A stretch of DNA of 64,000 nt from Chlorokybus atmophyticus (taxonomy: Eukaryota; Plantae; Mesostigma and Chlorokybus algae): NCBI GenBank assembly GCA_009103225.1, contig RHPI01001517.1, positions 136,505 through 200,504 on the forward strand, in the 5' to 3' direction. This document shows, in pieces, positions 983 through 42,451 of this stretch (position 1 is the stretch's first letter; each line of letters starts with the position of its first letter). The notes under the pieces are model-generated. The model did no database searches. It was not told the DNA's origin and worked only from the letters and a program-made list of their open reading frames with translations. The position numbers were made by a program, and so were the translations under genes.

Positions 983-1654
983 TGTAACAGTCAAGGCCAA
1001 ATTCTGTGATTTTCATGGCCGTTTTAGGCCTTATTTGTAAGGTACATGTTTTTAATGACTTGTGGCGGATATCGGCGAGTTATGAGTCTGCCGCGGATAT
1101 CGACCGGGGCCCCAAGACCAGTCCGGAAGGTGCCAGAAAACGGAGGGCCAGTCGAGAAGGGCTCGACCAGATTTCTGGAAGGGCCTGGCGCCAAGTAGTA
1201 TAACTTGACCATATGAGCAGCAAATTAGGAGATCTTTGGTGCGTTGGAAAGGTCTAGAAGTGTACTACAAGATTCTGCAAGAATATCTTAGCTTCTAGTT
1301 CCGTCTAGCGCTAGAATCGTCTAGACAGTAGCATGTGCAGACTGGTAGGTATAAAAGTGACATTCTACAATTTGCAATACAACCTTTAGCTCCCTAGTTT
1401 CTGGTGTGCAAGCTTGGTGGTGGTTAGCAGGGGTTGCTAGCGTGTGGCCACTGGTGTGTGCTTGCTTGTGTGACGATCCAAGGCGCTACACAAGTCGGTG
1501 TGTAGCTTCGAGCGCATGCGCGTGCGTACGCGAGTGGCGGGGCGCGCGTGTGTGCTTGGCAGAGGGGGCAAGGTTCCGGTGTGAATACCGTGTCTTGGTG
1601 AGAGGGTTGTGGATTGGACCAACTCACAGGTAGCAAGGCACGAGCACCGCCACA
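983..1654 (+). repeat. 5' LTR
   Basis: Direct repeat of 6361-7032; I found 2 differences by eye, both C/T (1509, 1650). TATAAAA at 1350-1356. Confidence 0.97.
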
Positions 1655-1656
1655 GC

Positions 1657-1668
1657 TGGTATCGGAGC
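1657..1668 (+). promoter_or_regulatory. Primer binding site, initiator tRNA-Met type
   Basis: TGGTATCGGAGC 2 nt after the LTR; one base from the common plant iMet PBS TGGTATCAGAGC. Confidence 0.85.
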
Positions 1669-1748
1669 ACGGTTTACGAAGGTGAGAGAGGAAGTGTGTG
1701 GGCGTTTACACTTTTCATTCGGAAGCGGAGTGTAGTGTGTTAGTGGAG

Positions 1749-2777
1749 ATGGAGGATGCTCGCATGGAAGAGCTTCAAGCTGCCATCTTGGCACTGAGGG
1801 AAGAGCTTCATCACACTCAAGCGGCGGCACAAGCACAACGCGAGGCGTATGAGCATGCGATGGCGCGTGTACAAATTCCCATGGCATCAAGCTCGCGCGT
1901 GCATGTGAAGGTGCCAAAGCCCAAGCCATTCAAGGGTCAACGTGATGGAGATGCAGTGGATGAATGGATTTTTCAAGTATCGTCTTGGTTGAAGCTCACG
2001 GAGGTGCCCACGCATCTGCACGTGGAGGTTGCAGCGACATTGCTTGAAGGTGCAGCACTTGTGTGGTGGAGGCATTGATGTACGCGTGTTGCAAACGGGT
2101 TGGCGCTACCATTGACCACCATGGAAGAGTTGACACTGGAGGTCAGGCATCAATTTGTTCCCGTTGAGAGCGTGAAGGCCGCACGCGACAAACTTGCAGC
2201 CCTTGTGCAAATGGGGTCGGTGATGGCGTACACGGCCGCGTTTCAGCGATTGGTGATGTCCATACCCAATATGACCGAGGAGGAGCAGTTGGACAGGTAT
2301 ACACGTGGTTTAAAACCTTTGGGGCGTAAAGAAGTGGAGCTACGGGACCCGAAGACACTCGCGGAGGCTATACGCATCGCGGAGCGTCTCGACGCGTTGT
2401 ACTTGAAGTCCACCACAAGAAACATTGACTGGAGGCAAAGGCATGGTTATCAGCCCCAGGGAGGCGTTCAACATGCGTGGAGACGAGGAGATCCAAGTTT
2501 AGCACTTGCCAATGGAGGTGGAGCTGACTCTGGGCCTGCACCAATGGAGGTGGGTGCCATACACACGCATGGAAGTGAGGCGAAGCACGGCGGACGTGGT
2601 GAAAGAGGTAAAGGTGTGCGCAAGTGTTATGCGTGTGGGTCGACGGAGCATTTGGCGTACGGATGCCCCAAACGAAGCACGCAAAGGCCAACACTGGATG
2701 GCAACCCTCGCCGTGATCGTCGCGTCAACACCATGAAGCAAAATGGCGTGGAGCAGGAAAACGACTTCCCCCAGTAG
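1749..2777 (+). pseudogene. gag: gag with CCHC zinc knuckle, interrupted by an in-frame TGA
   Basis: ORFs 1698-2078 and 2100-2777 share a frame; TGA at 2076-2078 (WWRH*CTRV); retrotransposon-gag-like core and CYACGSTEHLAYGC knuckle. Confidence 0.92.
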
Positions 2778-5700
2778 GTGAGGAGGCTACTGCTGGGGAT
2801 AGGAAGGAGCCTCATGCACGGACGGATGCTGTGACATTTCCATTAAAGAAGCAAGAAGAGATGGCTTTGAACGCGCCAATGGTGGTGAGTTATGCAAACG
2901 AGGAGACAACAAAGTACTTCGGGCTTCGAGCACACATTTGCGATGACCAAGGACGATGGAGAGAGTGTAAGCTCATGATTGATAGCGGTGCCAACAGCAA
3001 CTTCATGAGTATTGATATCGCGCGGCGTTACGGTTGGCTTTCGTCATTACGAGGAGGTGAAGTGAAGCTCGCTGATGGAGAGCCACCCTCTGGAGGTGAT
3101 GGCGCTGCGTTTATGACCAAAGAGTTGTGCGTTTGCATTGGGAAGATGAAGGAGAGCATGCGGTTTTGCTGCATCACCCTACGGAACGGGTTTGATGGGA
3201 TTTTGGGACTACCGTGGCTATGGCAACATAATCCAGCCATCAATTGGAGGAAGCGCGTGCTCACCATCGAGCGAAACGGTGGAGAGTCCATTCAAGCTGC
3301 ATCGGACGTCATCGAGGCGCGGCACGCACAATTAGGTGGTACGACAATTGCCCAGATCTCTTATGTGCAATTGAGGAAGTTATTGTCTCCACGGAAGGCA
3401 AAGGCTGCATGGTTGTGCGTGGTGCGCGAAAACACTGCAAAGTCAGCACCCGGAGCTGAGTGACGATGTTCAGACGGCTACTATGGACCCCGAGGTGTGT
3501 AAACTTGTTAAAGAATACCAAGATATCATGGTGGACGGACTTCCATCTGGTCTACCACCTCCACGGAGCGTAGACCACCGTGTGGAGCTGATTGAGGGCG
3601 TGCACAAGCCACCGTATCGACCCGTATACAAGTTGTCACCTTTGGAACTGGAAGAGGCCGAGAGGCAGGTGGCGGACTTGCTGAAAAGAGGCTACATCAG
3701 GCCTAGTAAGTCCCCCTATGGTGCACCTATTTTGTTTGTACGAAAGAAGAACGGGAGCTTGCGCATGTGCGTCGACTACCGAGCTCTCAACAACATCACG
3801 AAGAGGAATTGCTTTCCACTCCCACGTATCGACGAGTTGCTGGAGCAATTGCAAGGTGCGCAGTACTTCACAACACTTGATCTTGCTGGAGGTTATCACC
3901 AAATTCGCATCGCGCCCGAGGATGTGGAGAAAACAGCTTTTAACACACGTTATGGGCACTACGAGTGGTTGGTCATGTCCTTCGGACTTACGAACGCACC
4001 GGCAACATTTCAAACGCTTATGAACAGCGTTTTTGCTGACTTGATTGGTAAGGGAGTCCTCGTGTACCTCGACGACATTTTGGTGTACGCGACAACAAAG
4101 GAGGAGCACGTGGCACTTCTACGGCGCGTGTTGCAGCGTTTGCGCGAACACAAGTTGTACGCCCAGCTACAAAAGTGCAAATTCTTGCTTCGAGAGGTGG
4201 AGTACCTAGGCCACATTGTGTCGCATGAAGGCATCAAGCCGGACCCCAACAAAGTGCAGGTGGTGCGCGAGTGGGCTGCCCCGACCAATGTAAAGGAGGT
4301 GATGTCCTTTTTAGGCCTTGCGGGGTATTATCGCAAGTTTATCATGGGGTTTTCGCGCATAGCTGCTCCCTTGACTACCCTACTCAAGAAGGGAAAGCAT
4401 TGGAGCTGGTCAGCAACAGAGGAACATGCATTTGCTGCGTTGAAGAAGGCGCTGACGGAGGCACCAGTCCTGGCTCACCCCAACATGGAAAAGACATTTA
4501 TTTTGGCTTGCGACGCGTCCGACACAGCCGTAGGAGCTGTTTTGCAGCAAGACCATGGCAACGGCCTTCAACCAGTAGCATTCTTCAGCAAGAAGATGAG
4601 TGGTGCGGAGCTGAATTACCCCGTGCACGAGAAGGAACTTTTAGCGCAAGTCATGGCGCTACAACAATGGCGTTGTTTTTTGGAAGGCAAAAAGTTCGTG
4701 CTTGAGACGGATCACTCTCCACTGAGGTACTTACAAACACAACCTCATCTGAGTCGCAGACAAGCTCGATGGCTTGAGTTCTTTCAACTTTTTAACTTCG
4801 ATATCAAGTACAAGCCCGGTACGTCAAATGGTGTTGCTGACGCGCTGAGCCGGCTTAATGCAATTGAGGCACTCGCTCAAGTGCAGCCCGAGTGGACCGA
4901 CCAGATTCGGCAAGTGCTTCGTGAAGACACGGAGGGTATGAAAGTGTTGCAAGAGCTGAAAAATACAGCTACGGACACAAGTGGGCACTGGTCAATGCGC
5001 GACGGGCTGCTGTGGCACCATGGGCGCTTGTACATCCCCTACGTCGCGCATATCCGTGTGAAGTTGCTGAAGGAAGTTCATGATGTGCCCATTGCTGGTC
5101 ACCAAGGGTTGGAAAGGACTTTGGCAAGCTTAAAACAGCGTTTTTACTGGCGAGAGATGCATCGCGATGTGCGCGACTACGTAACGTTGTGCGACGCATG
5201 CCAAAAGGTGAAGGCAAGCAACCAAAAGCCAGGTGGGTTGCTGCAACCTCTCCCTGTGCCGTTGTCCAAGTGGGAGCAAGTTACCATGGACTTTATCACG
5301 GGGCTACCAAAGACAAAAGAAGGGTACGACGCTATACTTGTGTTCGTCGATAAAACCAGCAAAATGGTACGCTTGGCACCGTGTAGTGAGTCTTGCACGG
5401 CACCGGAGGCAGCACGCTTGTTCGTGAAGCATATATTTCGTTCTCATGGATTACCACGAAGCATTGTGAGTGATCGCGACCCGCGCTTTACAAGTAAGTT
5501 TTGGGAGGCGCTGCATAGTGCACTGGGTACCACACTGAAGTTTAGCACGGCATTCCACCCGCAAACTGATGGGCAAACGGAGCGGGCCAACCGTGTGATC
5601 GAGGACATGCTGCGTTGCTACGTTAACGCGCGACAAGACAATTGGGAGGAGCTGCTTGAGTTGGTTGAGTTTGCGATCAACAACCACCACAATGCAAGCA

Positions 5701-6365
5701 CAGGTGTCACTCCCTTCCTTATGAACTACGGGCAACATCCATTGACACCGTTGACGGCATGGACACCGCGACGACATGACGTGCGTGTGGAGGCAGCTAA
5801 TGACTTCCTTACAATGTGCGCGGACATTAACCAGGCAGCTAGGGATGCGTTATTGGTGGCACAAAATCGGCAGAAGCAGTACGCGGACGCGCATCGCCGA
5901 CACCTCACGTTTCAGGAAGGCGACATTGTGTTACTCTCCGCGAAGCACGTCCAGGTGCGTACGGGAGTTCGCAAGCTGAATGAACGCTGGTTGGGACCAT
6001 TTAAGGTCAGCAAAGTTATCTCGGACGTGGCGTACAAGTTGGAGCTACCCGACACCATGCGTGTGCACCCCGTTTTTCACGTCTCCCTTCTGAAAGCATA
6101 TTGAGGACAACCGCCAGAAAGGCCACCCCCCGAAGTTGGCACGGACGGTGAACCCGAGTGGGAGGTAGAAGACATCCTTGGAGAGAAGTTTGTGCATGGC
6201 GTACGCAAGTTCTTAGTGAAATGGAAGGGCTATCCGCTGCATGAAGCATCCTGGGAGCCAGAGGCACACTTGTCTAATGCTCAAGACGTTGTGCGTGCCT
6301 ATCTTGCTCGACGACACCCTCGCGAGCTTCGAGGACGAAGCTCACCTGGGGGGGGAGGAGTGTAA
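2759..6365 (+). pseudogene. pol: pol: aspartic protease, RT, RNase H, integrase, chromodomain; one frameshift and one in-frame stop
   Basis: Overlaps the gag end in the -1 frame at G GAA AAC (~2756-2762). Motifs: LMIDSGA, YLDD, HHCC/DDE integrase, GPF. Frame change at the A-run ~3429-3432; TGA at 6102-6104 is followed in frame by EWEVEDIL...FLVKWKGYPLHEASWEP to TAA 6363-6365. Confidence 0.93.
6348..6360 (+). promoter_or_regulatory. Polypurine tract
   Basis: GGGGGGGGAGGAG abutting the 3' LTR. Confidence 0.9.
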
Positions 6366-7032
6366 CAGTCAAGGCCAAATTCTGTGATTTTCATGGCCGT
6401 TTTAGGCCTTATTTGTAAGGTACATGTTTTTAATGACTTGTGGCGGATATCGGCGAGTTATGAGTCTGCCGCGGATATCGACCGGGGCCCCAAGACCAGT
6501 CCGGAAGGTGCCAGAAAACGGAGGGCCAGTCGAGAAGGGCTCGACCAGATTTCTGGAAGGGCCTGGCGCCAAGTAGTATAACTTGACCATATGAGCAGCA
6601 AATTAGGAGATCTTTGGTGCGTTGGAAAGGTCTAGAAGTGTACTACAAGATTCTGCAAGAATATCTTAGCTTCTAGTTCCGTCTAGCGCTAGAATCGTCT
6701 AGACAGTAGCATGTGCAGACTGGTAGGTATAAAAGTGACATTCTACAATTTGCAATACAACCTTTAGCTCCCTAGTTTCTGGTGTGCAAGCTTGGTGGTG
6801 GTTAGCAGGGGTTGCTAGCGTGTGGCCACTGGTGTGTGCTTGCTTGTGTGACGATCCAAGGCGCTACACAAGTCGGTGTGTAGCTTTGAGCGCATGCGCG
6901 TGCGTACGCGAGTGGCGGGGCGCGCGTGTGTGCTTGGCAGAGGGGGCAAGGTTCCGGTGTGAATACCGTGTCTTGGTGAGAGGGTTGTGGATTGGACCAA
7001 CTCACAGGTAGCAAGGCACGAGCACCGTCACA
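6361..7032 (+). repeat. 3' LTR
   Basis: Direct repeat of 983-1654, followed by TSD GTCCC. Confidence 0.97.
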
Positions 7033-7079
7033 GTCCCGCACTAGAGTCGCACTTGTAGTGCGTCCTTGCTCCTGTGGTT

Positions 7080-7260
7080 GATGGTACGACTTATGCATTC
7101 GTGCCATCCACTTCGTACAACCATTGGTAACAATGGTTGTACGAAGCATGGATTGTGTCGTAACATTTATGGTACGACAAAGGCATCTCTCGTCCAACCC
7201 CAGCCATTGCCGTACAATGGCTCTGTCGTACCATTCATGGTACGACAGAGGCATTGCTCG
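7080..7260. repeat. Cluster of short inverted repeats built on GTACGA
   Basis: CTTCGTACAACCATTG-gtaa-CAATGGTTGTACGAAG (16 bp), CTCTGTCGTACCAT-tc-ATGGTACGACAGAG (14 bp), AGCCATTG-ccgta-CAATGGCT. Confidence 0.85.
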
Positions 7261-9098
7261 ATCAGCCCTAATGAGAGTTAGCGTGCACTCACCCAAACAC
7301 GCTTCATTGATGGCCGGATGATGGCACGCAGGGGCACTAGGTCGATAACGGGTCGAATGTCAGACATAGTGGGCCTGGATTCGATCAAGAGGCGGAGGAC
7401 CAGGAGTCGGAGGCGGCGGCGGCGGCGGCGGCGGCGTGGCACATCTTGCGAGAAGTTGTGGTCGTAAGAGTTCAAGCAGCGAAGCCAGCTACTACCGGGC
7501 GCCACGTCATGGATCATGGCAGGCGTCAGCAATGGGCTTGTCCAACATGCATCACCAACATTGGACAAACCAGCAGGCAAGCCATTAAGGACCATCTTCA
7601 CACAGAGAGCTGCTTGGTGGCTCGCTTTCTGCAACAAGGAGTGGATCACGAGCTGCAGTCCTTGGAGCCCCTTGTCAGAACCATGTGGGACCAATTGCGG
7701 CTGTGGGAACAAGCACAAAGGAATGCAGAGGTACGCTCAACAGTCACATGCATTTCCTTGCAAGAGCAATTTGTTTTTTAGCACAGTCCATGTGATACAT
7801 GTAGCGTGGCTGCAGGCCTCCACTATTCACCCATACCCACCCTACAGTCAAGCCGACATAGCGGAAGCCAGAGCAAATAGACAGAGCTGGGCGGCGGTAT
7901 GTTGTTGCCAATCTCGCTGTGCATGTTGACTGCATGCACCTCCAATGCATGCCTACCTTTGCATGCTAGGATGTGCGTGAGCGTGCGAAGTCGCGCGCGC
8001 GTGCCGAACGAAGTAGGCTGGGCTTAAGCACAAGAGCGCGTGGCCATTTGTCCGGCATTCAACCAATAGTGCATCAACCAGCAATGACGCAGTCCATGCA
8101 ATCACTCGTGCATCAACCAGCAATGCCGCAAGTGACTGTTTAAAGCAACCAACTGATGATGGTGTGACGCAGTTGACTATTGCAATTGCAGTGTCGCAAG
8201 CATGCAGCTAACCCACATGTGATTGGTTGACAGCACCACAGTGCACTAGGTCTTGTTGGAGCTCCTATGCAAGCCTGGATTCAATCCCATCAACTGGTCC
8301 TTCAATCCCACTTGCTGATGGGCGCGGCGGCAATGCGGCATGAGTATAACATGCATGTTGGCCTGTTGAATCCCGACATGTCCATTGAGGCAGTGGCGCA
8401 TGATGTGCCCATCGCTCACGAGCTCCCTGACGAGTCTGCGATTAAGGGTGGCGGGGAGAGTGCACCCAATACCACCTTGTCAACCCTCATGGCTTCCCCT
8501 GCTCCATGCAACCCACGGGCCATTGAGGTAAGTCGTTGTCTTTTATGCTTGTGCCTTGGTAACAATGCGTCAGGCACTGCATAAGCTTATATTCGTCCTT
8601 TGCAACATTGTGAGCCATCTTATCCTGGGTTCTGTATACAGCCCCCCTTGCTGCATGCACAAGTGGTCTCACCTGCCGCTCCTGCTCCCCTCGCAGCCAG
8701 AGCGCAACCACCTTCCGTGGCACCAGTCCTTCATGCACTGCCATCTCCTCCACGAGCAGCACCGGTGATTGCGGGGAACAATCCTTCTTACCGCCACCGG
8801 CAAGACCACAGCACAATGCAACAGCCGATGTGGCTTCTGCACCTACCTTACCCCACCCGCTGCAAGTTGAAGCCGGCAGTCTGCCCCAAACTCAGGTACT
8901 TTATCAATCGCTGTGACTCTTGCCGTCCACAGTTGGACACACCATTTTAGTGCTGTATGCGCATGCAGCAGGGGTCACCATCTGCCAGCGAGTCATCAGA
9001 GGAGCTGGCCGCAACCCGCATACGGCCATCAGTCACGCTAGGTGGTCAGCTCGCCTCATGGGACCACTTCAATGCGCCAACACACGGCTTGACGTTGA

Positions 9099-10889
9099 AG
9101 GACCATGCATAGTCCGTACCCCGCGGGCCAGGACTGCCTGGTCCGCGGGGGACGGACCGTTCCTGGTCCGTTCGGGGCCCCGCGGCCCGTGAATGGCTGG
9201 CGCGGCGACGCGCACCACGCATGGTCCGTGCCGCACCATCCATGGTGCGGCACGAACCTGTACTGTACGCTGGCCCTTGAATGCGGACCAGGTGCGGTCC
9301 CGCAGTCCTGTGGCCCTATTAGCATGCACCGTACATGGTGCCGCACGGTCCGCACCGAACTATGTACGGGGCAGCACGGACCAGTGACCGCGGCCCTGCC
9401 ACTATCATGAGTAGGTAGCAGCAACCTACGTAAGGTACAATATATTGCCTAACTGCCTGATTGCACAAGTGCACTTAACGTGTTAATTGACGGCGTGTAT
9501 AGCCGACAGCCGCACCGACTGTCGGCTATACACCGTGGACAGCCGCAAGTGGATAGCCGCAAATGGTCGGCGGCTGATTGACAGCCGGCCGGCTGTCAAC
9601 TAAGCTGTAAGGGGCTGTCTATGCAATTAACATACTTGATACTACCGTACGTGTATTTGCAAAAATCTGTGAACATGCACCATTAACATGTTCTATGCGT
9701 TTATCTAAGTATCTACGTATATATGAACATTAAATATATATCATATAATACATATATATGAATGTTAGCGTGTGCACAAATGGATCCAAAGCTTATACGC
9801 ATTTTAAATGGCTATATCAGCCGTATTATGGGGTGAGCCGTGTACAAGGTATGTCTCATGTGAACATACGTATAACAAGTATTCATAAGTCACGTCACTT
9901 ATTAAATAGCCTCTTATGAGACCGCAGAATGATTAAAAGCCCCGACCAAACATTATGTCAATCAGCCATTAGATACCTACATTAGTGCCGCAATGCTCGT
10001 CGTTTCGTATTTATATCATGTAAACGTGTATAAATATATATAAGAATGTTTACATATGCACACATGTAGCTGTGTGTATGCGCACGCAAGCAGGATATCG
10101 ACAACCCCAAACAAGGTTACATACTCATGAGCAGCCCCCAACAAAGCATTGCAGTTTACACACCTTGGCAGCCGCCGAGTTGCGGCTGCATGTGTCATCA
10201 ATAATGACGTAAAATAATGTGATACCGTGGATTAATACTGGTACAGCCTATGCACATTGATAGCGCATGCACTGCCTATGGGCCTGTCAATTCACAACGC
10301 CGACTTCCTGTGCAATTTCCGCCGCCGACAGTCGCCAAGCGGCCGTCGGTACAGTCTATTATGCAAGTACTGCACCGTCCCTATCGGTACGTGCACATGT
10401 AGCTTAGTGGTTAGGGTGTCGTGTTTGTATTCCAAAGGTCTTGGGTTCGACTCTTGGTGGGTGCATGCGTTCTTCACTAATCATTTCTAAGACGCCGCGG
10501 CCTCGTGCGCCTGCAGCCTGCGGCCCCGCAGGTCGGGCGTGGCCGGTGCTGCCGGCTCAAGATAGAGCACTTTTCCGTCATTTGCATTACATCTGATGCC
10601 ATTGAATAAGTATTGCGGTCAATGGTCCGCTGGCCGGACCAGTAATGATTTCTGAATCTAATGGTTTTTGTTGAGTCCCTGGTCCGCTGACTGGCTCTTA
10701 CCTGGTCCTGACGCGACCGTAAACAGGCCGGACCAGACATGGTGCGACCCCAAAAAACATGGGACCGTTCACGTGAGTTTTGGACCATGCATGGTCGGAC
10801 TGTCAATGACAGTCCGACCAGACATGGTCCACGGAATTCACTTAGCAGGGGAAAATCCCGGTTCGAGGGTACGGACCATTTGTGGTCCT
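9099..10889. mobile_element. 1.8-kb non-autonomous TIR element (MULE-like by TSD length) inserted in the OTU exon
   Basis: Imperfect TIRs AGGACCAtgcATaGTCCGTACCC / AGGACCAcaaATgGTCCGTACCC; flanks TTGACGTTGA (9089-9098) and TTGACGTCAA (10890-10899); TGGTCC/GGACCA subterminal arrays at both ends; excision restores the frame. Confidence 0.85.
10393..10465 (+). pseudogene. tRNA-derived pseudogene, Thr(TGT)-like
   Basis: 73 nt with box A TAGCTTAGTGG, box B GGTTCGACTC and TGT at the anticodon position; acceptor and anticodon stems are broken. Confidence 0.7.
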
Positions 10890-13223
10890 TTGACGTCAAT
10901 CGGTGTGCAACGGGTGGTAATTGCTTCTACCATTGTGTATTTTGCGCCAGGCCATTCATAGCGCAAAGTGTCCTGGATGATGACAAGTGCCCCAGCTCGA
11001 GCAGATTTTGGGCCATGCTGGACACCATGGACGACGGCAGGGGGGACACTCTCCGCAAAATCACCGCCAAGGCTGTCGATGCAGGCGTGGCGAGCAGAAG
11101 CCTAGACTTCTGCAGAGCCACTATTGCCGCGAGAGAGTTGGCGCAGTATTACGACAAACTGCCTGCGATAATGTTGGCTGATGTCAATTGCAACATTGAC
11201 CTAGCCATGGCCAAAGTGCGACAGATCTTGCGGAGAAAACATGTGTACGTTGAGCACCTGCAGATGACCATGTTTGCCAACAAGCTGGGCTTGTTAATTG
11301 GCTGCGTGACCGTTCAGCGCGAGCATGGGGAGTGGGTGCCACGGCCCGGCAGCGCAGTTTGGGTTGGAAATAAAGAAGCCCCCAACTCAGTCCTGGTGGT
11401 GGGCAACACTGCTCCTGATGAGCCAGAAGCACACTTTTGGCTCCTCAAGCCTGCAAGCACCGAACAGNAAGCATTGAACAGTGGTCGTGGTGCCAAGTGC
11501 CACCAGAGGTAACACATCTGATCGGAGAGTGGCGGAATGGCGTTGCCAATTCCCCGCTACCACCGGCTGTGACCCACAGTGCTGCGCCAACGCCTCAGGC
11601 CTCACCTTCGTGTGCTGACAGGACGAAAAAAGGAAAGATGAGGCATCTTTACAACGTTAGAAGAAGCACATCGCCTTGAAACCTCATTGGCTGACTGTGT
11701 GTCCTGAGTAGGCACAGGCGGGTTTACAGCGTCAAGTGGCTGCTCAGCATCGTTCAGAGAGACAGCCGGTGCGGCACGAGCTGTCTAAGCTAAAAGCACC
11801 GACGCGCAGACGTTTTGAGGGGCTAACTCGTAGTGCAAAGAAGTTGATCGCCCTACAGCACGCCCGAGACGCGCTGCATCTCCGCATGCGGCATGCCTCG
11901 AGGTGGGTGACGAAAGTATGCAATAAATGGGAGCAAACGCGGAGAGTGCGGTCTAAACAGACCTTTGGAATTTGGCCGTGGTTGGAACCCATACACAATA
12001 TGGCCATCCGTAATACGTTGTTGCCCCTCGCCGTCCTCGATATGATGGTGTTGTTGCTGCCGCAGCAACCACGCAATGTGCAAGAGCTATCCGCGGAGCA
12101 GAACTTCGACCTGCTGCAGCAGACGTACCAGTTGATGTCGACTGATGCGGGTCGAGATGTGTGCCGCTACCTGAGCAAACAAACTGGGTGGCAAGTAAAA
12201 CCATTCGAGCTGTACTTGGCATGCTATAGCTGGCAGTGGCTGTATGTCATACGGCACGTCGAGCTGATTCTGTGGAAGCTCGAAGCAAATGGCGATGCGG
12301 GGGAGTCACGAGTGACGACAGCCATGTCAAGGGCCTGGATGAACGCATGCTGGACGAGACCAGCAGGTGGTGTATGGCGGCAGATGGGCAACAGGTGATC
12401 GAGCAGGCAGTGGAGCGTTGTGCTGCGCCATTCAGATGGGAGTCGCTACGCCTGCAACGCGATAACAGAGTTTGGTGGCAGATGCAGTTTGCACACCCGC
12501 GTGCACCATGTGTGCTGATTTGTCGCAATGAAGAGCCCCCCCCCCCCCCCCCCAGTGGATGGGAAAACGCCCTGTTGCAAGAAAGCGATGTGCCATGTCT
12601 GCATCATAGCACATCAGCAGACCGTGGCAAATAAATTGAAGAATCTACAAGCATGTCCCTTCTGCAAGCAACCTCACCCATTTTGGTCGCCACGCCTGAT
12701 GCACGACGCCAACGTATCGGCGGTGATTTGGCCCCCGCCTTGATGGCAATTGTGCATGTATTGTGGTTTTGTGTTGGCTTCCTGTGAACCATGTAGGTAT
12801 ATGTATAGTGCAGCATGGTGCATGGTGCACCCGAGATCTGCTGTTGTTAGAAGCATTGGCTGTACATGTGTATGATGCCCGGCGCATGAGTCAGTGCATG
12901 GCTTGCATACCTCGCTGGTTCAGAGCGTGGTTAACAGCAACAAACTTGGACACACTGCTCTGGGTTCCATGCATTGACATCACAGTATTGCTCTACAATC
13001 GTGGTAGTATGCGAGTATCCTTGTACTATAGTACCATTAACAGATGGAGTACCATTCATTTTGATGTAGTACCATGCATGAGTTTGCAATAGCGTCCATG
13101 GTACAGTCGTGCTTCACTTGAAGTTTGACCCATTTAGGGTTCGTAAGCTGGCAACCCTACATTGATGCCCATACCCTAAAGTCTCGCTCAGTTTGTGGGC
13201 AGCCGTGTCGATTTCTATTTTGC

Positions 13224-14980
13224 ATGATGTCGGCGGCAGCAGTTGAATCTCCCTCACCTAGGAGACCATGCTTGGTGTGCCCACAATGCAATGCGTACGT
13301 ATGTGCCAATGGCCGTAGACAGCAAATGCGAGCACACTTGACCGAATGCCAGCGAGTGCAGATAGTGTGCCACAGTTTTACTGCTGCTTGCTGGCATCAC
13401 ACCACACACAATGTCGACGTGTTTGGTTGCCGCCTCGGCCAAGTGCTATGCAAGGAACCCGAGTTTTTCCATTGCGTACAGTGCGTGTGCGAATCTTGCT
13501 CGCGCTCATGCTTCGAGTGGCGAGGGGAACCCATGCGCTTCTCCACATAGACAACACCAGGACATGTGGTTAGTAAACATGTGGTAGATGCTGTGGAGGT
13601 AATTCGGCAGAGTGGACCGCAAGGTATCACTGCATGTTATGCATGTTGAAGCTGTTGTCGCATTCAGAGCAGTCTTCCACAGTGTGGGCGTGGGCAGTTA
13701 CATCCCCTGGCCGCTGTAAAGGAGGCAGACCATCGACCATTGGACAGCGCACTGCATCGGCTGCGGAACGCAGTTAGGTTGGGATGCGAGGAGCTGATCG
13801 GTGTGAGTGTCATGGTACATTGGCCGCTGGATGGGGAATGGTATGCGGGCGTTGTGGAATCATTCAAGCAAGTGTCAGGTCAGCATCGCTTCGTGGCGTG
13901 TGAGATTGAGGACGCATCATATATGCATGGTGCAATGGAAAATGTCTTTGCAAGGCAGCACCGTATAGTATTCGATAACGGTAATCGACCACAAACCATC
14001 GACTTCAAAGGGCACAACGTATTCGCGTACACATCAGTTGACGGGGCACGCCATGTTCTGCGCACCGGAGGGGAGAACGTCAGTTGCAAAGTAAGCCCGG
14101 ACGGCATCATTGTTGGTCTCTGGCCCGCACCACGGCCAGCCTTGACCACATACACGCCGTTTGCCAACAAGCTTGGACACACACGCAGACCAAGGGCACT
14201 CGACCTATTCTGCGGCGGTGGCGGTGCCAGTGTCGGTATATACCACGCAGGCTTTGACGTGACCGGCATGGACATTAGTCCTTCCTATGAGTACCCCCTG
14301 CCCTTCATACACCGCGATGTATGCACCTTGAGTGCAGGAGAGCTGAGCGAGTACGAGCTCATTTGGGCCAGTCGACCATGCTAGGCCTATTCAGGTGCTA
14401 TCCCGGCACCTCAACGGGCGGCACATGGCACATTCTGGAGACACCAGGTTATGATACCGCTCGTTTGACGTCTGCTGCTTGCAAGCCATGCCAAGTTTGT
14501 GATTGAGAATGTGCCAGGAGCAGCTTCCTCATTCAGACCCAATCTGTCCCTTTGTGGCACGATGTTTGGCCTATCAACTTTCCGACACCGTCTGTTTGAG
14601 ACACAGCAAGTGGTAGCTACCCCACCAGCACGCTGCGCACACGCGGGCAAGGCAATTGGACTGCTGCGCCGCACCTATCCGCTAGCGCAAAGAAGACAAT
14701 CGTGACATCAAATGCGCCACAGCAAATGTACCCGGTCTATGGCCTTCCAAGCACCAGGGGCGGCATTGCTGCGTGGCAAACAGCGCTGGGAGTGCCATGG
14801 ATGACCTCGGCCGTTTTCATAGCGAATGCAGTTCCTCCCACAATGGCGGAGTGCATAGGGCGTCTCATGCTTGAAACGATAATATGCGTTGTGACTACCC
14901 TCCTGTGTCATGGACATATGGAAACTCGATTGTGGTGCACTGTATTGATGCTTAATGCCACACGGCGGACTGATTGTTGA
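13224..14980 (+). pseudogene. Cargo gene: zinc finger, Tudor-like domain, short phage-type DNA (cytosine-5) methyltransferase
   Basis: CPQC...MRAHLTEC; LIGVSVMVHWPLDGEWYAGVVESF...HRIVFDNG; RALDLFCGGGG (motif I, ~14193), MDI, WASRPC (14370-14381), FVIENVPG (~14505), LCGTMFGL-RHRLFE, WMT...NAVPPTMAECIG. Stops at 14382-14384 and 14466-14468, frameshift near 14700. Confidence 0.85.
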
Positions 14981-15353
14981 ATGTTGCATGGCACATTCGA
15001 TTGTGGTGACAGTTGTGCAGTGACAGCTGCCCGGTATTGTACACGTCCACATACAAAAGTCTTAGCATACGATTAGCAATGCCTAACTGACTGTTTTGCT
15101 CCAAACTCAGAGTAGTGAGACAAGTACATGTGTCACGTGGAAGTGCAGTGAACGTTCACTCAATACTTGCCCTCTTGTACACGGGCGCTGTCCTTGTCAA
15201 ACATTAGGAGCAGCTGGACAATGCCTTTTACTGCTCCTGAGTCACGACATCGAGATGTGGACCCCCTCGACGCTTTTCCCATTCCAGAGCGATGCACTTT
15301 GTGTCGCCCGTCACATCCAGCTTCGTGTACTAGCGGACAAACACGACCTCTTT

Positions 15354-18300
15354 TCACACGCGCTCGCCGCTACCACCCCACCCCACTACGCGCAAAAAAA
15401 GGAGTGCCTGAGCCCACCACGTCACGTTCACACCGTCCTCATCACCTTCCAAGTCAAGTGTACAGAACCAAGGCCGCCCATGGAACATCCCAGTTGCACG
15501 CGCCATGCTGACTCCTAATGTCATGTACACCGCTGCGCCTCCGTTCACCACGCGAACAGCACGCCACCCGTCGGCCAACTCCAGTTGTTCCCTCCTCAAC
15601 CAGCTGTCCAGGGTGGCAGTCAGCTTGTCGGCGAATGGAGTCTTCATGGCAACTTGGCGGCTACGCGTAGATCTGCTCCAGTACGAGCTAGATTTCCTCC
15701 TTGTCAGCGTATCCATCCGTAGCAACTTGTCCGTCTTCTCCATTACAGTACAGCACTGCTGCCGCGCCTGCGCCATGGCCGAGCGCATCTTGTGATCCAC
15801 GACCATGCCATCCTCGCTCACATATTGCGCACAGCTCCATGCCTTCAGAATACGTGCCTGGTAGTCCCGGTTATTGCCACCAGCCGCCCACCATTTGGTA
15901 TTTTGGGCGTGCGTCTGCTCCATGCGGTTGGCGCTGAACCAATCTAGGTGTCCACTGCTGACAATTGCTGGCCCAAAATGAGTGAGCTGATGCACCTTCT
16001 CAATCTTCCAACCTGACTTCTGTGCAGAATATGCCGACAGTAGCGGATGCAACACTGCAGCTTTAAAGGCAGCCAGCTCGTTGTCGGATGTGGTCAGGGT
16101 CTCTCTTGTGTGTTCATGCGCCTTGAGCTTCTTGTTCCACTGGGCAAGCGATGCGGCAGCAATGGTGAAGAAATCGTTGCCCTCACTGTCGAGCAGCAAA
16201 GCGTCTGCAAGGACCGGCAGCAGATGCAGCACCGCCACTTTCTCCACCACCAAAAAGGAGTGGTCGGACATGAAAGAATCTACTGTGCTTGTGGGTGCCT
16301 TGAAGTGCGAAACCCGTAGGGTCGCCTTGAATGCATATAAGGCTTGTGCACATCTGCTTGTGAGCAAGTGTCGTTGGCTTTTGTATTCAATACAAAAGCA
16401 ACACCCAAATGTGCCTGGCCTGCAGAATCTGTCTCGTGGATGGACGCATTCGCTCTTCGCAGCGTCGTACACAGCAACAAGCAGGTGGTTAATGATGCCT
16501 CCCAGCACATGCATTGCGTCAGGGGCAAGACGAGAGTAGCAGTCAGCTTCCGGCACTCGCGACTGTCGCCAACCTCACAGTGCATTCTGTTGCCAAACCG
16601 CATTGCCTGGTTTCACGGAAAGCCATTCATCCTAACAAATGCCGGTAATTTGACCATTACCTCCTCGACATGCATGGAGTGCTGCTCTTTGAAAGCCTTG
16701 GCTGTCTGGCGTGCAATCCTAACACCGCTATGCAAGTCCGCCCGCAGCTGACGTATTGCTGGTGTGTAGAAGGCCTCAGTTCTCAATTCCCCAATCCTCC
16801 ATCTCCAACAAATCTGATTTGGTGACGAGACAAACATCGCAAGGATGTCGTGTTTGGTTGCCCGACATAGTGCGTGCGAGTGTGGCAGTCTCCTACAACA
16901 CGACAAACTCAAATGCTCTACTGACAACATCTTCCATGCACTGTTTGCTGGCAGGCTGCATCCGGCTACAACCATGCATGCCCACTACCTGCAAGTCGCA
17001 AATGTAGTTGGCAAGCGCGGGAAACACACGATGCTCGATGCCATTCGGGTCGATGAGCTGCAAACCTTCCCAACTCGCCCGCTTCACATCCCCTAGCACT
17101 ACATTCAAAGCGTCATGAAAAATCTCACGTTTTCGAATGGAGAAAGATTCCTTGCCCTGCGCGCAGGTGGGATGCCCGACCACTGCGTGAACCACCGGCA
17201 TAAGAGCTATCATAACAACCCCCATGTTGCTAGCATACATGTCCCAACTATAGTTGGCAAGCGATGCCATCAGAGAGTAGCTAGAGCGCTTGCCCGCGCT
17301 GTCCAGCGTGGTCTTGTCACTGTACAGAATGGCAGGCGCCAAGTAGGACGCTTCCCCCACCTCTCTCCTCAAATCCACCTCCACATTCTTCCACAAATTG
17401 CCCGTGGAAGGATGGCCAAAGCTGTGCTCGTCACCACTGTACTGGAGATTGAAGCCATTGGCGGCATGTGGATTGCCATACAACCGCGCGAGCCATACCT
17501 GCTCCGACCAAGAGCATTAACAGGCATGCTGGCCTCGGAATAGATATTGCATCGATACTGCATTAGGTACTGCATTTTACAGATCTTGGCAAGTATATGT
17601 GACGCTGATGTCCTGATCCTCAGGGTTTCAAGGCTTGCGCACATCAGCTGTCACGTAGTTTTGATACAGCAGCACACTCGCATGTGCATATGTGACATGG
17701 CTCTAATGGTTGAAGCACATGCACCGCACACCGTGAACACACCTAAGACTTAGAGAAAGCAATTGTGGTCTGGAGGTAGCTGGCCACATGCACACCGGTC
17801 TCCCACTGGAGCTCTTCCATCCGGAAGTGTGCATTTCGGATGCAATTGATGATCCGCCCCATGTCGGAGGCCGACAGGCCTTGGCTGTTGCTGCACTGCA
17901 CGAATGCCACTGCAAGAGCATGCTCCGAGCCGTACCACCTGGATTCCGACGCATGCGAAGGGACGCCTCCACTTCCATGTTGGCGTGCCACAGGTTTCTC
18001 AGGCACACGCACACATCGAAAGCCCTCGTTCACTTCCTCCTCTTCCTGTTGTTGCTGTGCGTGTGTCTCCAGGAGGAATCCTTCAGCATCAAGCATGTGC
18101 GCATGCTGGATCGAACTCCTCGGTTCAACATGACCCGCATCGTACTGTAATGGGCGCTGGCCGACATACAGCTTGATTTGCTTGCACACGCTGCTGCTAA
18201 TAATGTGCATGTAGACCGAGCTGCGTGTGGCGAAGCGCATGTGGCAATACGGACAAAGGACTCCCATATCTCACTACTAACGTCGACACAGGTGTCGCCA

Positions 18301-18384
18301 ATGTAACCTGCTGCTAATAATGTGCATGTAGACCGAGCTATGTGTGGCGAAGCGCATGTGGCAATACGGACAAAGGACTCCCAT
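15354..18384 (-). pseudogene. Plavaka-type (CACTA/CMC-related) transposase, multi-exon, degraded
   Basis: N-terminal CPYC...HIISSSVC finger; LAPAILYSDKTTLDSAGKRSSYSLMASLAN; FHDALNVVL...PNGIEHRVFPALANYICD; PDAMH; WKIEKVHQLTHFGPAIVSSGHLDWFSANRMEQTH. Short GT-AG introns and several stops near 17550-17620. Confidence 0.85.
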
Positions 18385-18428
18385 ATCTCACTACTAATGT
18401 CGACACAGGTGTCGCCAATGTAACCTGC
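18191..18428. repeat. 117-bp tandem duplication covering the transposase start and zinc-finger codons
   Basis: Units start at 18191 and 18308 and differ at 3 positions, all C/T or G/A transitions. Confidence 0.95.
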
Positions 18429-18699
18429 ATCATATCCAGCAACACGCACACCCTCCGCCACCGCCACCGCTACCCTAGCATGCCAAAGGCGGGAAACTTG
18501 GCCGCCATTTACTGGCTCCATGAGTCCGACAGCTCGACTCCATGTTATAGGGTAGTTTTATGCGCAAGTCGGCTGCTCAGTTGCAAATGGACATGCTCTC
18601 ACCACTGCCGATACATTGTATATATTGTGGGCTTATAGGTGCAAGACCAAACAATCAGTCCAAGGTTTGTACAAGCTGCATGGGATGCTAGTGTTGGCT

Positions 18700-18950
18700 T
18701 ACGGCAAGAATTGCCAACTTTTGTCAAACGGCAAGGGTCACATATTAACAGCAGTGTAACGGCAAAGAAACTGCCGGCTATTGCTGTCAGCTTTCCGAAA
18801 CTACCGGCTAACGGCCGTCTGTGCACATCGACCAAAGGGTAACTGGTTGACAACTCTCGGCCGGTTAGTGCCACTGACAACCACTTTCGGCCCGCGGCCG
18901 TCTGCGTCAGTCCACTCAAGCCAACGGCAAACCCAACAGTTCAAAAGTAA
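18700..18950. repeat. Iterated short motifs (AACGGC, CCGGCTA), putative subterminal repeats
   Basis: Several AACGGC/CGGCTA/CGGCCG copies between the transposase start and the abrupt switch to Ty3 protease sequence. Confidence 0.5.
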
Positions 18951-18989
18951 CATTTTAGGCAGCGACAGGTAGGCTCATGCAGGCTCAGG

Positions 18990-21900
18990 CACCAGTCAAT
19001 CCCTCAGTCCTTAGTCAGTCCGTGTAACCGTGTAAAATTTGCGACGCTGTTGTGGACGTTCAGTGGCACAATGCAGGGAATAACCTGTTCGTTCTTGATT
19101 GATACTTGTGCAACACACAACTTTATTGAGGAACAATGGGTTGTGCGCAATATTATAGCGTGTAAACCCTCAGCATTTTCAGCTGCCGGTGCTGGGGTAT
19201 GTTGCCAGTGAAGGGAGAAGTAAAAATGAAGGTAAAGAATTGTAGCTATCATGCCAACCTCACCTTCATAGTGGTGTCCATCAACATAGCTGGTGTTGAT
19301 GTGGTACTCGGACAGGAATGGCAGGAAAGTGTCAACATGACATTGGATACTGGTGCACGATTGTGCACAGTGAAAGAGGGGTGGTAAGCGAGTGACGCTG
19401 TCTGTGAGAGGGTCCCATAGCTTGGTACATAAGCAAACTGACCCCGCGCTTCTCACCGCACTGCAGTGAAGTGAAGCGTGCGTTGCGTAAAAACACACCG
19501 GCTTTCCTTGTGCACTTAACGTCGTCTGATGACTTTGTGCTTGGCAGTACGGAAGGTATTGCAGACGTCATTGAGAAATACCAGGATATATTCTCAGATG
19601 CGTTGCCAGGCTTACCCCTTGATCGAGGTGTCGGGCACACAATACCATTACTTCCTGATAGAGAACCTCCGTTCCGGCCTATAAATGGGCTCAACCCCAA
19701 TGAGAGGGGAAATGGAAACTCAAATCAAGGAGTTGTTGGAGAAGGGATTGATTGAACCAAGTTCTTCACCCTTTTGCGCACCCATTTTGTTTGTTATGAG
19801 AAAGAATGGGAACTTGCGCATGTGTGTAGATTATTGTGCTTAGAAAAAGATCACGGTAAAGAATCGATACCTGTTACCACAGATTGATGATGTGTTTGAT
19901 AAGCTGTTGGGGAATGCGTATTTTAGTACGCTAGACTTGACAAGCGATTATCATCAAATCCGTATTCACCCTTCTGATGTTTACAAGACAGCATTCAGAA
20001 CACCTTCAGGTTATGATCAGTACAAAGTGTTACCTTTTGGACTGACAAATGCACTTGCGGTGTTTAAGAAAAAAATGAATAAAATCTTTGGTAATATGCT
20101 GGGCAAGCATGTTATGGTTTACTTGGATGACATTATTGTCTGCAGTAAAACAAAAGAAGAGCACAAAAGGCACCAAGAAGCGGTGTTCGCTTTACTGCGA
20201 GCACATCGCTTGTTTGCCAACTTGTCAAAGTGTGACTTTTGCAAGACAGAGTTGCCATTCTTAGGGCATATTGTGAGTGGTGCGGGTGTAAAACCTGACC
20301 CTCGCAAAGTGCAAGTGGTAAAAGATTGGCCTCAACCTAAGAATATCCATCAGTTGCGATCATTCTTGGGGTTGGCAAACTACTTTCGCAAGTTTATGAT
20401 GGGATGCTCTACAGTTGTGGTGCCTTTTACAAAACTGTTGCGTAAGGATGCCCCATTCTCTTGAACAGCAGCACAAGAAGCTGCTATGCAACAAGTGAAG
20501 CTGGCTTTGACTTCGGCACAAGTATTGGCATTGCCAAATTGGGATAAACACTTCACTGTGATTAGCGATGCCTCCACCCTTGGATGTGGTGCAGTATTGC
20601 TACAGGATGGCTAACCATGTGCTTATGAGAGCAGGAAATTCATCCCAGCAGAGATGAACTACACTACCACTGAGCAGGAATTGCTTGGTATTGTGCATGC
20701 TCTTAAAACATGGCGATGTTACTTGAAGGGAGTTTAGTTCACAGTGGTGACTGATCACAACCCGTTGATGTACTTCTCAACACAGCTAAACTTGTCGCGT
20801 AGGCAAGCTCCCTGGAATGAGTTCCTGTCGCGGTTTACCTTTGAATGGGTATACCGGCCGGGCAGGACCAACGTGGCAGACTCTGAGTCGCTGTCTGTCA
20901 TTGTTGGCAGTTATGCGTGCGCAGTTGCTTGCAATGCAGGGTACATTGCCTCCTGATGATGAGTTTGTGCAAGCTGTTTTACAGGGGTATGCATTAGACC
21001 TATGGTTCTCTATACAAGAGAATGTACAAAAGCTTGACAAAAGAGACTACTTGTATTATATGGGCGCCAGCTTGGTGATACCTGACCATGCTGGGTTGCG
21101 CATGAAATGCATAGCTGAAGTACACGATCCACACCGTATGCTGGGCACTTTGGAAGTCGCAAGACTACAAAGGCAGCGCAACATTTGTATTGGTGGCCAT
21201 CGTTGCCTGTTGACGTGAAGCATTATGTCGACACGTGTGACAAATGTCAGCGTGACAAGCCGTTACTTTCAAAACCCGCTGGGTTGCTGCGACCTTTGCC
21301 TGTTCTTGATGGCAAGTGGGAAAGTGTGAGTATGGACTTAATTACTGAGCTCCCGGAGACAGCATTAGGGCACACTGTGGTTGCAGTTTTGTGGACCGTT
21401 TGACAAACACAGTTCACATTGTCCCTTGCCGCACGGAAATAGGCTCCCGCGAGTTAGCGATGGTTTTTGTCGCCTCTGTGTTTAAGTTACATGGCTTGCC
21501 TCGTAACTTCGTGTCTGATTGCGTTCCGCGATTTGTAGCTCAGTTATAGAAGTCGCTATGCAGCTTCTTACATATTCAACAGAACATGAGCACAGCTTAC
21601 CATCCACAGACGGATGGTCAAACAGAGCGCGCTAATTAAGTGATTGAGGAAACCATCCGGCATTATGTGAGTCCGAACTAATCTGATTGGGATGTTTATC
21701 TCCCAATGGCTAAGTTCACGATTAACAATGCATGGCAAAAGACTGAAACTCCGTTTTTCTCGAATTATGGAGTGCAACCACTGAGTCCTGCAAACATTGA
21801 ATTGCCCGCTACCGACATAACTCGCGTACCTGCAGCCCGTGAAATGGCTTCGGCCATGCACGGTAGGTTAGCATTGGCAAAGGACTGTTTGCGCGCAGCG

Positions 21901-22765
21901 CAAGACAGACAAAAAGCCCATGCTGATGCGCATCGTAGAGAGGCCAACTACGATGTGGGCTGTTCGGTACTTCTCAGCACCAAAAACATATCCATCAAGG
22001 GTGTGGGTACCCGCAAGTTTTTCCCTCGCTGGATAGACCCTTTTAAGGTGATTGATCAGGTCGGCACTCACGCGTACCGTTTGGACTTGCCAAAATCGAT
22101 ACGCATTCATAATGTGTTTCGTGTGAGTGTACTGAAACCATACCGTTCTGACGGTTGGGTTCAACCTCCTCCACCCCCAATTGCAGTGGATGCGACGATA
22201 CTTTTGAGTATGAGGTGGAAGCAATCTTGAGTCATCGTTAGCCTCGACGCGGACGCGCGCCGTCTTACTTGGTGAAATGGAAAGGGTATGGCGTTGAGCA
22301 CAATACATGGGAGCCCGAAAGGAATCTTACCAACTGCCAGGACATTCTTCAGGGGTACTGGAGTACTGTGTCCACATGCGGACGGTGAAAGGGTGCTGGC
22401 AGACATCTTTACCGCTTTGGCCCTGATTCTCTTACTACTTTCGTTTCTTTACTCGTCGTGGGGCTTTGCTAAACCTTCAATGAGGACATTGAAACCTAAG
22501 TGGGGGGAATGTAACGGTGTGCTATTTCCATAGAGGTTCCCCGCCCTTATTTAGGATTAAGTAAGGGTCCCAACGGGATTATACAGCCTAGTAAGCCATA
22601 TTAGGGCCGTTAACCTATGTTAAGGCCCTAATGTAGTGTTACTTATTATTAACACTGATATCGACATGAGACATGAGTCTCATGTCGATATCAGCCGCAT
22701 GGCGGCGCTGCTAACGCAGCGGCCGCCATAGCCAGGGGATCTTCTGCTTCGGCAGTTGCCCTGGC
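18990..22765 (+). mobile_element. Older, heavily mutated chromovirus Ty3/Gypsy relic (pol, PPT, start of 3' LTR); gag and 5' LTR missing
   Basis: FLIDTCATHNF protease, VYLDD RT, RNase H, integrase, chromodomain YEVEAIL...YLVKWKGYGVEHNTWEP (~22207-22360), many stops and frameshifts; PPT AAGTGGGGGGAA then TGTAACGG at 22510. The LTR end is not defined. Confidence 0.92.
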
Positions 22766-22890: not shown

Positions 22891-24105
22891 AATCTTTTCC
22901 TCACCCGGGCTCTTCCCTTTGGTTGCTTCCAACATGTGTGCGCTTGTACGAGGCATATGGTGTCATCAATGCATGTATTTGCGGTGCGTTGAAAAAAATA
23001 TGAGTGCATGTGTTGGGCCTTCATTAACAAATTGCATCGCAACAACTAGTAGATGCACATAGGTAGGTTGAAGAGTGTGTTACTCAAATGGATTGTGCAT
23101 GTATCCAACAAGCTGCATGTGCACACGCACATGTGCACATGTTTGCACCGTGTTTTGTTTTCTTAAATACAACCCCCTTGAGTTGTAACAGCTGTTACAA
23201 CACCCCCCATTAATTGAAGGGGGGGGGGGNNNNNNNNNNNNNNNNNNNNNNNNNNNNNNNNNNNNNNNNNNNNNNNNNNNNNNNNNNNNNNNGGGGGGGG
23301 GGGGGGGGGGCTTGCACGGGGGTCTTATTAAATTAAACCACGGTATATGCATGCATTCATGAGTGTGCTTATGTCTCTGCGCGTGTATGTGCATGTACAG
23401 TCCGTGAGCAAGGCCATGTGTAAGATGTGCATAGACATGTGTGCATACCATACGTGATGTATGGTACAATGTGAATATGTGTGCATATATAGCAATACGA
23501 ATGAGTATACATATATGTATTTAATACATGTATATTATCATGCACTTACCTGTCGACTGCGCAACGCATCGGTTATGAAGGCTTTTTGAGGTATGTTTCA
23601 TGAGTTCTAGCAAAGTTACGGTCAGCACATCAAGGTGTAGTTTAATTATGCTGGTAGGACTCACATGTGACTGATAATCGCTGGTTGTGACCGGTTTGGG
23701 AGTTGTATGGTAGTTGTGGCAGCTAAAGTGGTTAAAACGGTTGTAGAGGTGTGGTAGGAGGGTATGTAAGTGTCCTTGACTTGTGTTGCAGCTGGTTGAG
23801 CGCAAGTCCCTTGTTCTATTGGAAGCATAAATCTACTTGGAAAGGCTTCAAGACTTGGTTGGTCGTGACCTTGGTCATGTGCTTGCCTTGAGTGTGCACA
23901 TGCTTAGATATGCTTGTGTGTATGAGCGTGTACTACACCTTGTGAACGGACCACACCTTGGCCTCATTTCCCCGTGCATCACATGCCAATTGCAAATGTA
24001 GAAGCCCGTGCTGGTGTCTAGGTTGGCTAAGACAAGCGCTTGTTACTTGCGCTCAACTCATTCGCATAAAGGTGTGCGGGTGTTTGTGGTTGTGGTGGAC
24101 GTGGA

Positions 24106-26700: not shown

Positions 26701-27329
26701 GCTCAAAGCGAGGGGGGGGGGGGGGGGGGGGNNNNNNNNNNNNNNNNNNNNNNNNNNNNNNNNNNNNNNNNNNNNNNNNNNNNNNNNNNNNNNNNNNNNN
26801 NNNNNNNNNNNNNNNNNNNNNNNNNNNNNNNNNNNNNNNNNNNNNNNNNNNNNNNNNNNNNNNNNNNNNNNNNNNNNNNNNNNNNNNNNNNNNNNNNNNN
26901 NNNNNNNNNNNNNNNNNNNNNNNNNNNNNNNNNNNNNNNNNNNNNNNNNNNNNNNNNNNNNNNNNNNNNNNNNNNNNNNNNNNNNNNNNNNNNNNNNNNN
27001 NNNNNNNNNNNNNNNNNNNNNNNNNNNNNNNNNNNNNNNNNNNNNNNNNNNNGGGGGGGGGGGGGGGGGGGGAGGGCGGATGCGATGATGCGTGTGGGTG
27101 AAGGCGAGTGAGGAGGTCAGTTGGCATTCTCGGAACGTGAACACCAGCTGAAGGGTGTGTGATGCGCGCTTGTTGTGTACAAATATGGGGCAGCTTCAGA
27201 AGAAACCCTAGCTAGCATACATGCTTAGAGGCAGCTACAGCATGCGAAGGTGGAGAAGGTGCAGCATGATGCGGCCATGACGAGCCTGTGGACGACATCC
27301 TCGAGCGACGACAAGAGATGCCATAATAA

Positions 27330-36186: not shown

Positions 36187-42451
<6,265 letters not shown>

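Follow-up and report, generated by a model that had tools for sequence, protein, structure and literature searches.

A decayed Plavaka transposon copy in Chlorokybus atmophyticus that probably moved a Tudor–cytosine methylase gene and an OTU-like gene with its transposase

Can a cut-and-paste DNA transposon carry chromatin-modifying genes as part of a single moving unit? The question is raised by a locus of the streptophyte alga Chlorokybus atmophyticus (assembly GCA_009103225.1, contig RHPI01001517.1, positions 136,505 to 200,504 of the forward strand; this stretch of 64,000 nucleotides is the window, and coordinates count from its first letter). Three gene remnants lie together here: a transposase on the minus strand is arranged tail to tail with a plus-strand pseudogene for a zinc finger–Tudor–C5 methyltransferase, and another plus-strand gene lies 5′ of this pseudogene. 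Most of the coding sequence of this three-gene block is continuous. A first reading of the letters alone (the original prediction) had described this convergent layout, and both order and orientation are as it claimed. Our analysis indicates that the region from approximately 7039 to approximately 19024–19046 is probably one dead copy of a multi-copy family of Plavaka transposons (CMC/EnSpm-related, DDE-type), whose members moved two accessory genes with the transposase by cut and paste.

The evidence that carries this conclusion comes from other copies of the same DNA. Logan contigs from two studies (three runs) were placed on 10800–16799 at a likeness of at least 80%, which gave 133 contigs (X1) and 306 contigs (X3) on these approximately 6 kb, with likeness ranging from at least 99% to below 90%. 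The region 10908–16791 is fully covered by contigs at 90–99% likeness, both intergenic regions included. Word depth is 87–134 for the long “master” contigs versus 3–6 for contigs with private variants, a difference that fits tens of near-identical copies, depth not being a copy number. Single contigs span 12263–13574, connecting the RING-like region with the zinc-finger exon of the methylase gene, and 13609–16091, connecting the methylase with the transposase. Since high-depth contigs bridge both gene junctions, the three genes form one multi-copy repeat rather than a group of single-copy host genes. Their co-occurrence in this order elsewhere, the test proposed with the original prediction, is borne out. 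The many contigs at 80–99% likeness in the runs of both studies show that the family is dispersed as well as multi-copy.

These data also bear on a quite different origin, in which the methylase and OTU-like genes would be decayed single-copy host genes adjoining an old Plavaka insertion. Such an origin would suit a Tudor domain of plant host type and a region crowded with nested transposons, but it fails to account for several hundred contigs at 80–99% likeness, which cover both cargo genes and are up to 20–40 times as deep as those of private variants. Single-copy genes syntenic with host genes are excluded by contig number, depth and continuity, and we regard this origin as extremely improbable.

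The identity of the transposase, predicted to be Plavaka-like, is confirmed by a Pfam match to PF18759 (Plavaka) at 16893–17483 on the minus strand (E 1.8e-19; 70.6 bits against a cut-off of 26.3). This match lies in the core and C-terminal region, which occupies a single minus-strand frame from 17498 to 15354, ends in a natural stop at 15354–15356 and contains six in-frame stops at 16895, 16778, 16730, 16721, 16634 and 16577 (four TAG and two TGA). An N-terminal C2H2-like zinc-finger exon is located at 17743–18267 on the same strand, and a 117-nt tandem duplication at 18191–18424 repeats the start of this exon. The C-terminal open reading frame (ORF) of the transposase had no homologue in a word-indexed search. 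Plavaka elements are known from green and streptophyte algae.

The second cargo gene begins with a plus-strand zinc-finger exon at 13215–13550 (CPQC...H...C), followed by a predicted Tudor domain at 13740–14180 and a short phage-type C5 DNA methyltransferase at 14181–14905, both on the plus strand. The prediction of a C5 methyltransferase was upheld by motifs I, IV, VI and AxPP, which occur in this order, and by homology to PF00145-bearing proteins (E 7.6e-14) and to PHROG 363, “DNA methyltransferase” (E 1.1e-13). The ORF at 13740–14384 closes with motif I (DLFCGGGGAS, approximately 14200) and motif IV (WASRPC), where a TAG stop at 14382 replaces the Q of the PCQ sequence. Motif VI (IENVPGA, approximately 14505) follows in the same frame, past a second stop at 14466, and the C-terminal block G..AW..ALGVPWMT..ANAVPP (approximately 14830) lies past a frameshift near 14700. 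Together the pieces are colinear with short C5 methyltransferases of approximately 220 residues along their full length. Pfam itself did not score the broken pieces, and no close solved structure or close NCBIfam family was found for the methylase. Relatives of the catalytic part are present on at least 529 phage-size IMG/VR contigs, none of them reaching into the Tudor part. Single-protein scans of IMG/VR and of the JGI metagenomes returned no close relatives of the Tudor–methylase and OTU pieces. The two top two-stretch matches among representative proteins, P0020 and P0021, were considered as Tudor fusions and rejected, being metagenomic proteins of approximately 450 residues in which a short C5 methylase domain occurs twice in tandem.

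The Tudor domain, also part of the original prediction, has its core at 13785–13913. Residues 16–58 of its ORF match internal repeats of P0033, a “Tudor domain-containing protein” from Tetracentron (phmmer E 2.1e-13 among 1.84e9 proteins), and the C-terminus of the PDS5-like plant protein P0120 (E 8e-11); pairwise comparison with the P0033 and P0120 repeats gave E 8e-8. According to Pfam, the matched segments of both proteins are PF21743, the PTM/DIR17-like Tudor family (E 5.6e-13 on P0033). The link to PF21743 is transitive through P0033 and P0120, as the window domain had no direct Pfam match. Its Atlas neighbours belong to Tudor-clan families throughout (scores 0.79–0.88), and we accept the domain as a predicted plant-type Tudor of the PTM/DIR17/PDS5 kind. 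Binding of H3K4me1 is reported for the Tudors of PDS5C (bioRxiv 10.1101/2022.05.28.493846).

The first cargo gene is present on the plus strand, and its predicted zinc finger–OTU–RING composition stands in part, the OTU assignment relying on Atlas features and motifs and the RING match being borderline. Its first exon (7446–7781, plus strand) contains a CPxC...H...C zinc-finger-like motif and had no Pfam match; a Pro/Ala-rich, low-complexity middle follows at 7782–9080 on the same strand. The predicted OTU-like cysteine-protease domain occupies 10910–11467 (plus strand), where the motifs GGNCFYHC and AHFWLL are 172 residues apart, a spacing suitable for a Cys/His pair. This domain had no match in Pfam, PDB or PHROG and no homologue in a word-indexed search. 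Its language-model similarity to OTU-bearing clusters in the Atlas is high, with a feature score of 0.93 and 186 shared features. Low-confidence single-sequence AlphaFold models, with pLDDT values of 39 and 38, place the Cys at a helix start and the His in a strand and offer weak support. We conclude that 10910–11467 probably encodes an OTU-like cysteine protease. The 3′ part of the gene (11736–12743, plus strand) comprises a domain without assigned function and a Cys-rich RING-like finger at 12573–12665. The second half of this finger aligns with the TRIM30 RING (2ecw) at a borderline E of 0.0087, its Atlas scores are 0.75–0.80 with mixed families, and in the decayed copy a Lys occupies a His-ligand position and the first pair reads C-x3-C; the assignment as a RING finger is thus a borderline one.

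Each of the three genes begins with a zinc finger, and the three share the CPxC..H..C pattern only, with no homology detectable between them by BLASTP (E 0.09, 11 and 2.5). A shared self-targeting module of three fingers was considered and is unsupported by these values.

The original prediction missed the nature of 9081–10907, inside its OTU gene. This stretch is a nested non-autonomous transposon of 1,827 bp, neither intron nor coding sequence, with inverted ends of approximately 41 nt (CACACGG..CCGTGTG-like) and a 3-bp target-site duplication, CAA, at 9078–9080 and 10908–10910. The last residues encoded before it, LASWDHFNAP, abut the insertion, which splits the OTU-like exon just 5′ of the putative catalytic Cys codon. 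In contigs of all three runs 9048–9077 is joined directly to 10908, and because other copies make this join, the nested element is a later insertion private to the window copy. Its end is resembled by GTCAGTCCGTGTA (19014–19026) at 12 of 13 positions, and it may have been mobilised by the transposase of the large element or of a related one.

Palindromes are a further feature of the nested element, which holds four of the ACCATGCATGGT type (GGACCATGCATGGTCC). With one mismatch allowed, the core ACCATGCATGGT is found seven times in the window versus 0.49 expected, four of the seven occurrences being those in the nested element. Palindromes of the form TGTCGTACCAT-NN-ATGGTACGACA are clustered at 7081–7247, 5′ of the first cargo gene and within the region 7039–7445 (plus strand), which starts with CACTAG at 7039 and may be the left subterminal region of the element. 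GTACCAT-type half-palindromes at 13027–13085 precede the methylase gene, and other copies have AGTACCATGCATGGTAC here. The presence of GTACCAT..ATGGTAC palindromes 5′ of both cargo genes suggests common regulation, and they may be putative binding sites for an element-encoded protein.

Comparison with the master copies also shows how the window copy decayed, and the predicted decay of its genes by stops and frameshifts is evident: besides the six in-frame stops of the transposase and the two stops and frameshift of the methylase, the frame of the first cargo gene is broken. All eight premature stops in the transposase and the methylase are TAG or TGA. The window has A in place of the masters' G at 66–75 sites and T in place of their C at 51–60 sites, and reverse changes number 13–26. 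The observed/expected ratio of CpG is 0.68–0.81 in the decayed copy versus 0.92–1.05 in younger insertions. The decay is a general bias from GC to AT, accompanied by mild depletion of CpG; CpG-specific deamination as its mode was rejected, since no more than 4 of the 19 transition sites listed are in a CpG context. Length changes have contributed as well. At the deletion point (11614–11616) the window lacks, at 11615, at least 466 nt that are present in the master copies. Farther on, the 3′ ORF of the first cargo gene is broken twice, by one missing nucleotide at 12306 and by a C homopolymer at approximately 12539 that is seven nucleotides too long. Once the indels of other copies are applied, 11736–12743 is a single undisrupted ORF. 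The C homopolymer and an N at 11468, in the OTU-like ORF, may partly be assembly errors. Through its nonsense mutations, frameshifts, nested element and deletion, the window copy is dead.

The ends of the element are less clearly drawn than its interior. A young and apparently intact Ty3/gypsy retrotransposon with a chromodomain occupies 983–7032; its 672-bp long terminal repeats (LTRs; TG..CA) are 99.7% identical, a Pol ORF of 873 residues lies at 3483–6104, and the 5-bp target duplication GTCCC is present at 978–982 and 7033–7037. An exact sequence look-up of this Pol ORF gave no record. The left edge originally proposed, 7039, is 2 nt past the target duplication of this insertion. The left end of the Plavaka copy could possibly be at approximately 7039–7047, in which case the element measures at least 10.6 kb once the nested insertion is subtracted and the deletion added back; alternatively, the copy could continue in 1–977 and past the window start. 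Neither a CGTCGCAA left end nor an inverted copy of the right end was found in 1–977 and 7038–7600. On the other side, the right edge proposed at 18970 needs to be moved outwards. The right subterminal region (18640–19046) contains four ACGGCAA repeats (18701–18930) and two candidate ends, GTCAGTCCGTGTA at 19014–19026 and TTGCGACG at 19039–19046, the latter being the reverse complement of the proposed CGTCGCAA end; the right end of the element is placed at approximately 19024–19046. Reported Plavaka termini are TGT..ACA or CATCA..TGATG, with CA..TG in the wider clade, and target duplications are 2–3 bp (PMC12730594). Between the two ends of the window copy no inverted repeat was detected.

A second Ty3/gypsy element follows at 19047–22400, with a Pol approximately 50% identical to that of the first in amino acids. 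It is without its first approximately 2 kb (5′ LTR and gag), beginning exactly at the end of the Plavaka copy, and the missing half is not in 1–977.

The claim of one large element is supported as far as the three genes in one repeated unit are concerned, and the enclosure of this unit by Plavaka termini is putative. Several points weigh against a single transposon. Neither terminal inverted repeats nor a target duplication could be assigned to the window copy, its left end is either at approximately 7039 or lost beyond the gypsy element, and we infer transposition as one unit from the repeat structure. Pfam recognised neither the OTU nor the RING domain, no relative of the Tudor–methylase fusion was found among 1.84e9 representative proteins, in IMG/VR or in the JGI metagenomes, and no RNA run containing the stretch was found.

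The lack of defined ends is also what would be expected if the repeated unit were not a single Plavaka transposon. The Tudor–methylase gene, with or without the OTU-like gene, could be a separate mobile or duplicated module that often lies beside transposases, or it could belong to some larger repeat, for example an insertion of viral origin; either way it would not be moved by the transposase. The abundance of the methylase family on phage contigs would fit such a module, as would the Atlas neighbours of the OTU-like domain, which are giant-virus clusters. However, the high-depth contigs extend without a break from the first cargo gene, across the methylase, into the transposase, intergenic DNA included, with uniform depth and likeness. 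The right side has subterminal repeats and an end that resembles that of the nested CACAC..GTGTG element with its 3-bp duplication, and no virus hallmark genes were seen in 7–19 kb. We consider the separate module unlikely on this balance, and prefer a Plavaka family in which transposase and cargo form one unit.

A mode of action can be proposed for live copies of such a Plavaka family. The transposase would excise and reinsert the whole unit. The Tudor domain would dock the fused methylase on nucleosomes with methylated lysine, its nearest relatives, the plant PDS5-type Tudors, being readers of H3K4me1, and the methylase would then deposit 5-methylcytosine (5mC) locally, at the element or close to it. 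The OTU-like/RING-like protein could edit ubiquitin attached to chromatin or to proteins of the element itself. A bolder proposal is that the family carries a self-contained methylation module with the part types of the UHRF1–DNMT1–USP7 axis (Tudor reader, RING ligase, deubiquitinase and C5 methylase), in which the PDS5-type Tudor aims a phage-derived methylase at transcribed gene bodies. The transposon enzyme might then contribute to, or have seeded, the unusual CG methylation of gene bodies that is reported for Klebsormidium, or the element might be disguised as a gene body to escape silencing. We rate this proposal as a long shot.

DNA methylation normally targets transposons, and a DNA transposon with its own chromatin-guided cytosine methylase would extend this picture. 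It would also extend DNA methyltransferase (DNMT) capture from retrotransposons to cut-and-paste elements, and the predicted joining of a plant-type Tudor and a minimal methylase of phage type in one protein would represent a natural reader–writer design. The VANC anti-silencing protein of VANDAL (Mutator-like) elements causes methylation loss and is without methylase, Tudor or ubiquitin domains. Compared by description only, VANDAL resembles the present element in that an accessory protein of a DNA transposon is thought to act on the element's own epigenetic state. The window copy itself is a fossil that shows the gene order of the unit, its mode of decay and its later insertions; it is dead, and so provides no evidence of activity.

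Among the closest known systems are the giant red-algal Plavaka elements of Bostrychia moritziana and Chondrus crispus, with their Plavaka-associated genes PAG1–3. Giant Plavaka elements of 17–19 kb make up one third of the Bostrychia genome, are present across red seaweeds, and carry three accessory genes, for an N6-methylase with SET, for ParB with a 2-oxoglutarate (2OG) oxygenase, and one without assigned function (bioRxiv 10.1101/2025.02.11.637652). Like the window element, the PAG elements are multi-gene units (10–19 kb) with a Plavaka/EnSpm-type transposase, many of them degenerate, whose accessory genes have predicted roles in DNA or chromatin modification and adjoin repeats possibly bound by element proteins. 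The hosts are red algae in the case of the PAG cassettes and a streptophyte alga here, and the cargo differs: an N6-adenine methylase and SET in PAG2 and ParB with a 2OG oxygenase in PAG3, versus the Tudor–C5-cytosine methylase and the OTU-like/RING-like protein in the window. No match to the PAG2 families PF01555 (N6-methylase) and PF00856 (SET) or to those of PAG3 (ParB-like and 2OG oxygenase) was found among the scanned ORFs of 7–19 kb.

Fungal PlavakaB and KDZ transposons carry TET/JBP dioxygenases (Iyer et al. 2014; PMC12730594), so that there, as here, a transposase is accompanied by an enzyme that acts on cytosine methylation. The fungal enzymes remove 5mC or oxidise it, whereas the cargo of the window element is a predicted 5mC writer, which would be added to the 5mC oxidases of fungal and the N6-methylase/SET of red-algal Plavaka. 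Transposable elements that encode their own C5 DNA methyltransferase are also known among retrotransposons: KnitGypsy-Dnmt3, a gypsy element of Klebsormidium nitens that captured a DNMT, and the DNMT retrotransposons of Symbiodinium (de Mendoza et al. 2018, PMC5890265). These have a eukaryotic Dnmt3 in the Pol polyprotein, in contrast to the separate gene of the present DNA transposon, which joins a plant-type Tudor to a short phage-type methylase. C5 methylase, Tudor or OTU cargo is not described in the literature we found mentioning Plavaka. The novelty originally suggested is thus narrowed, because giant Plavaka elements with chromatin-modifying accessory genes have already been published for red algae and fungi; what is new is the cargo combination only.

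Other features were noted elsewhere in the window. Two short ORF pieces on the minus strand at 68–322 (..INGHWVESHVDPKEDTIRIV.. and ..VGFDHDNEADAAKFYEVYW..) appear AP2-like by eye, a reading without Pfam support that was set aside; the pieces may be part of a host gene or of the left portion of the element. Assembly gaps, seen as N runs flanked by poly-G, are present at 23230–23300 and 26732–27050. Finally, an (AG)n microsatellite of approximately 900 bp at 38253–39150 explains why GC and AT skew are extreme in that kilobase.

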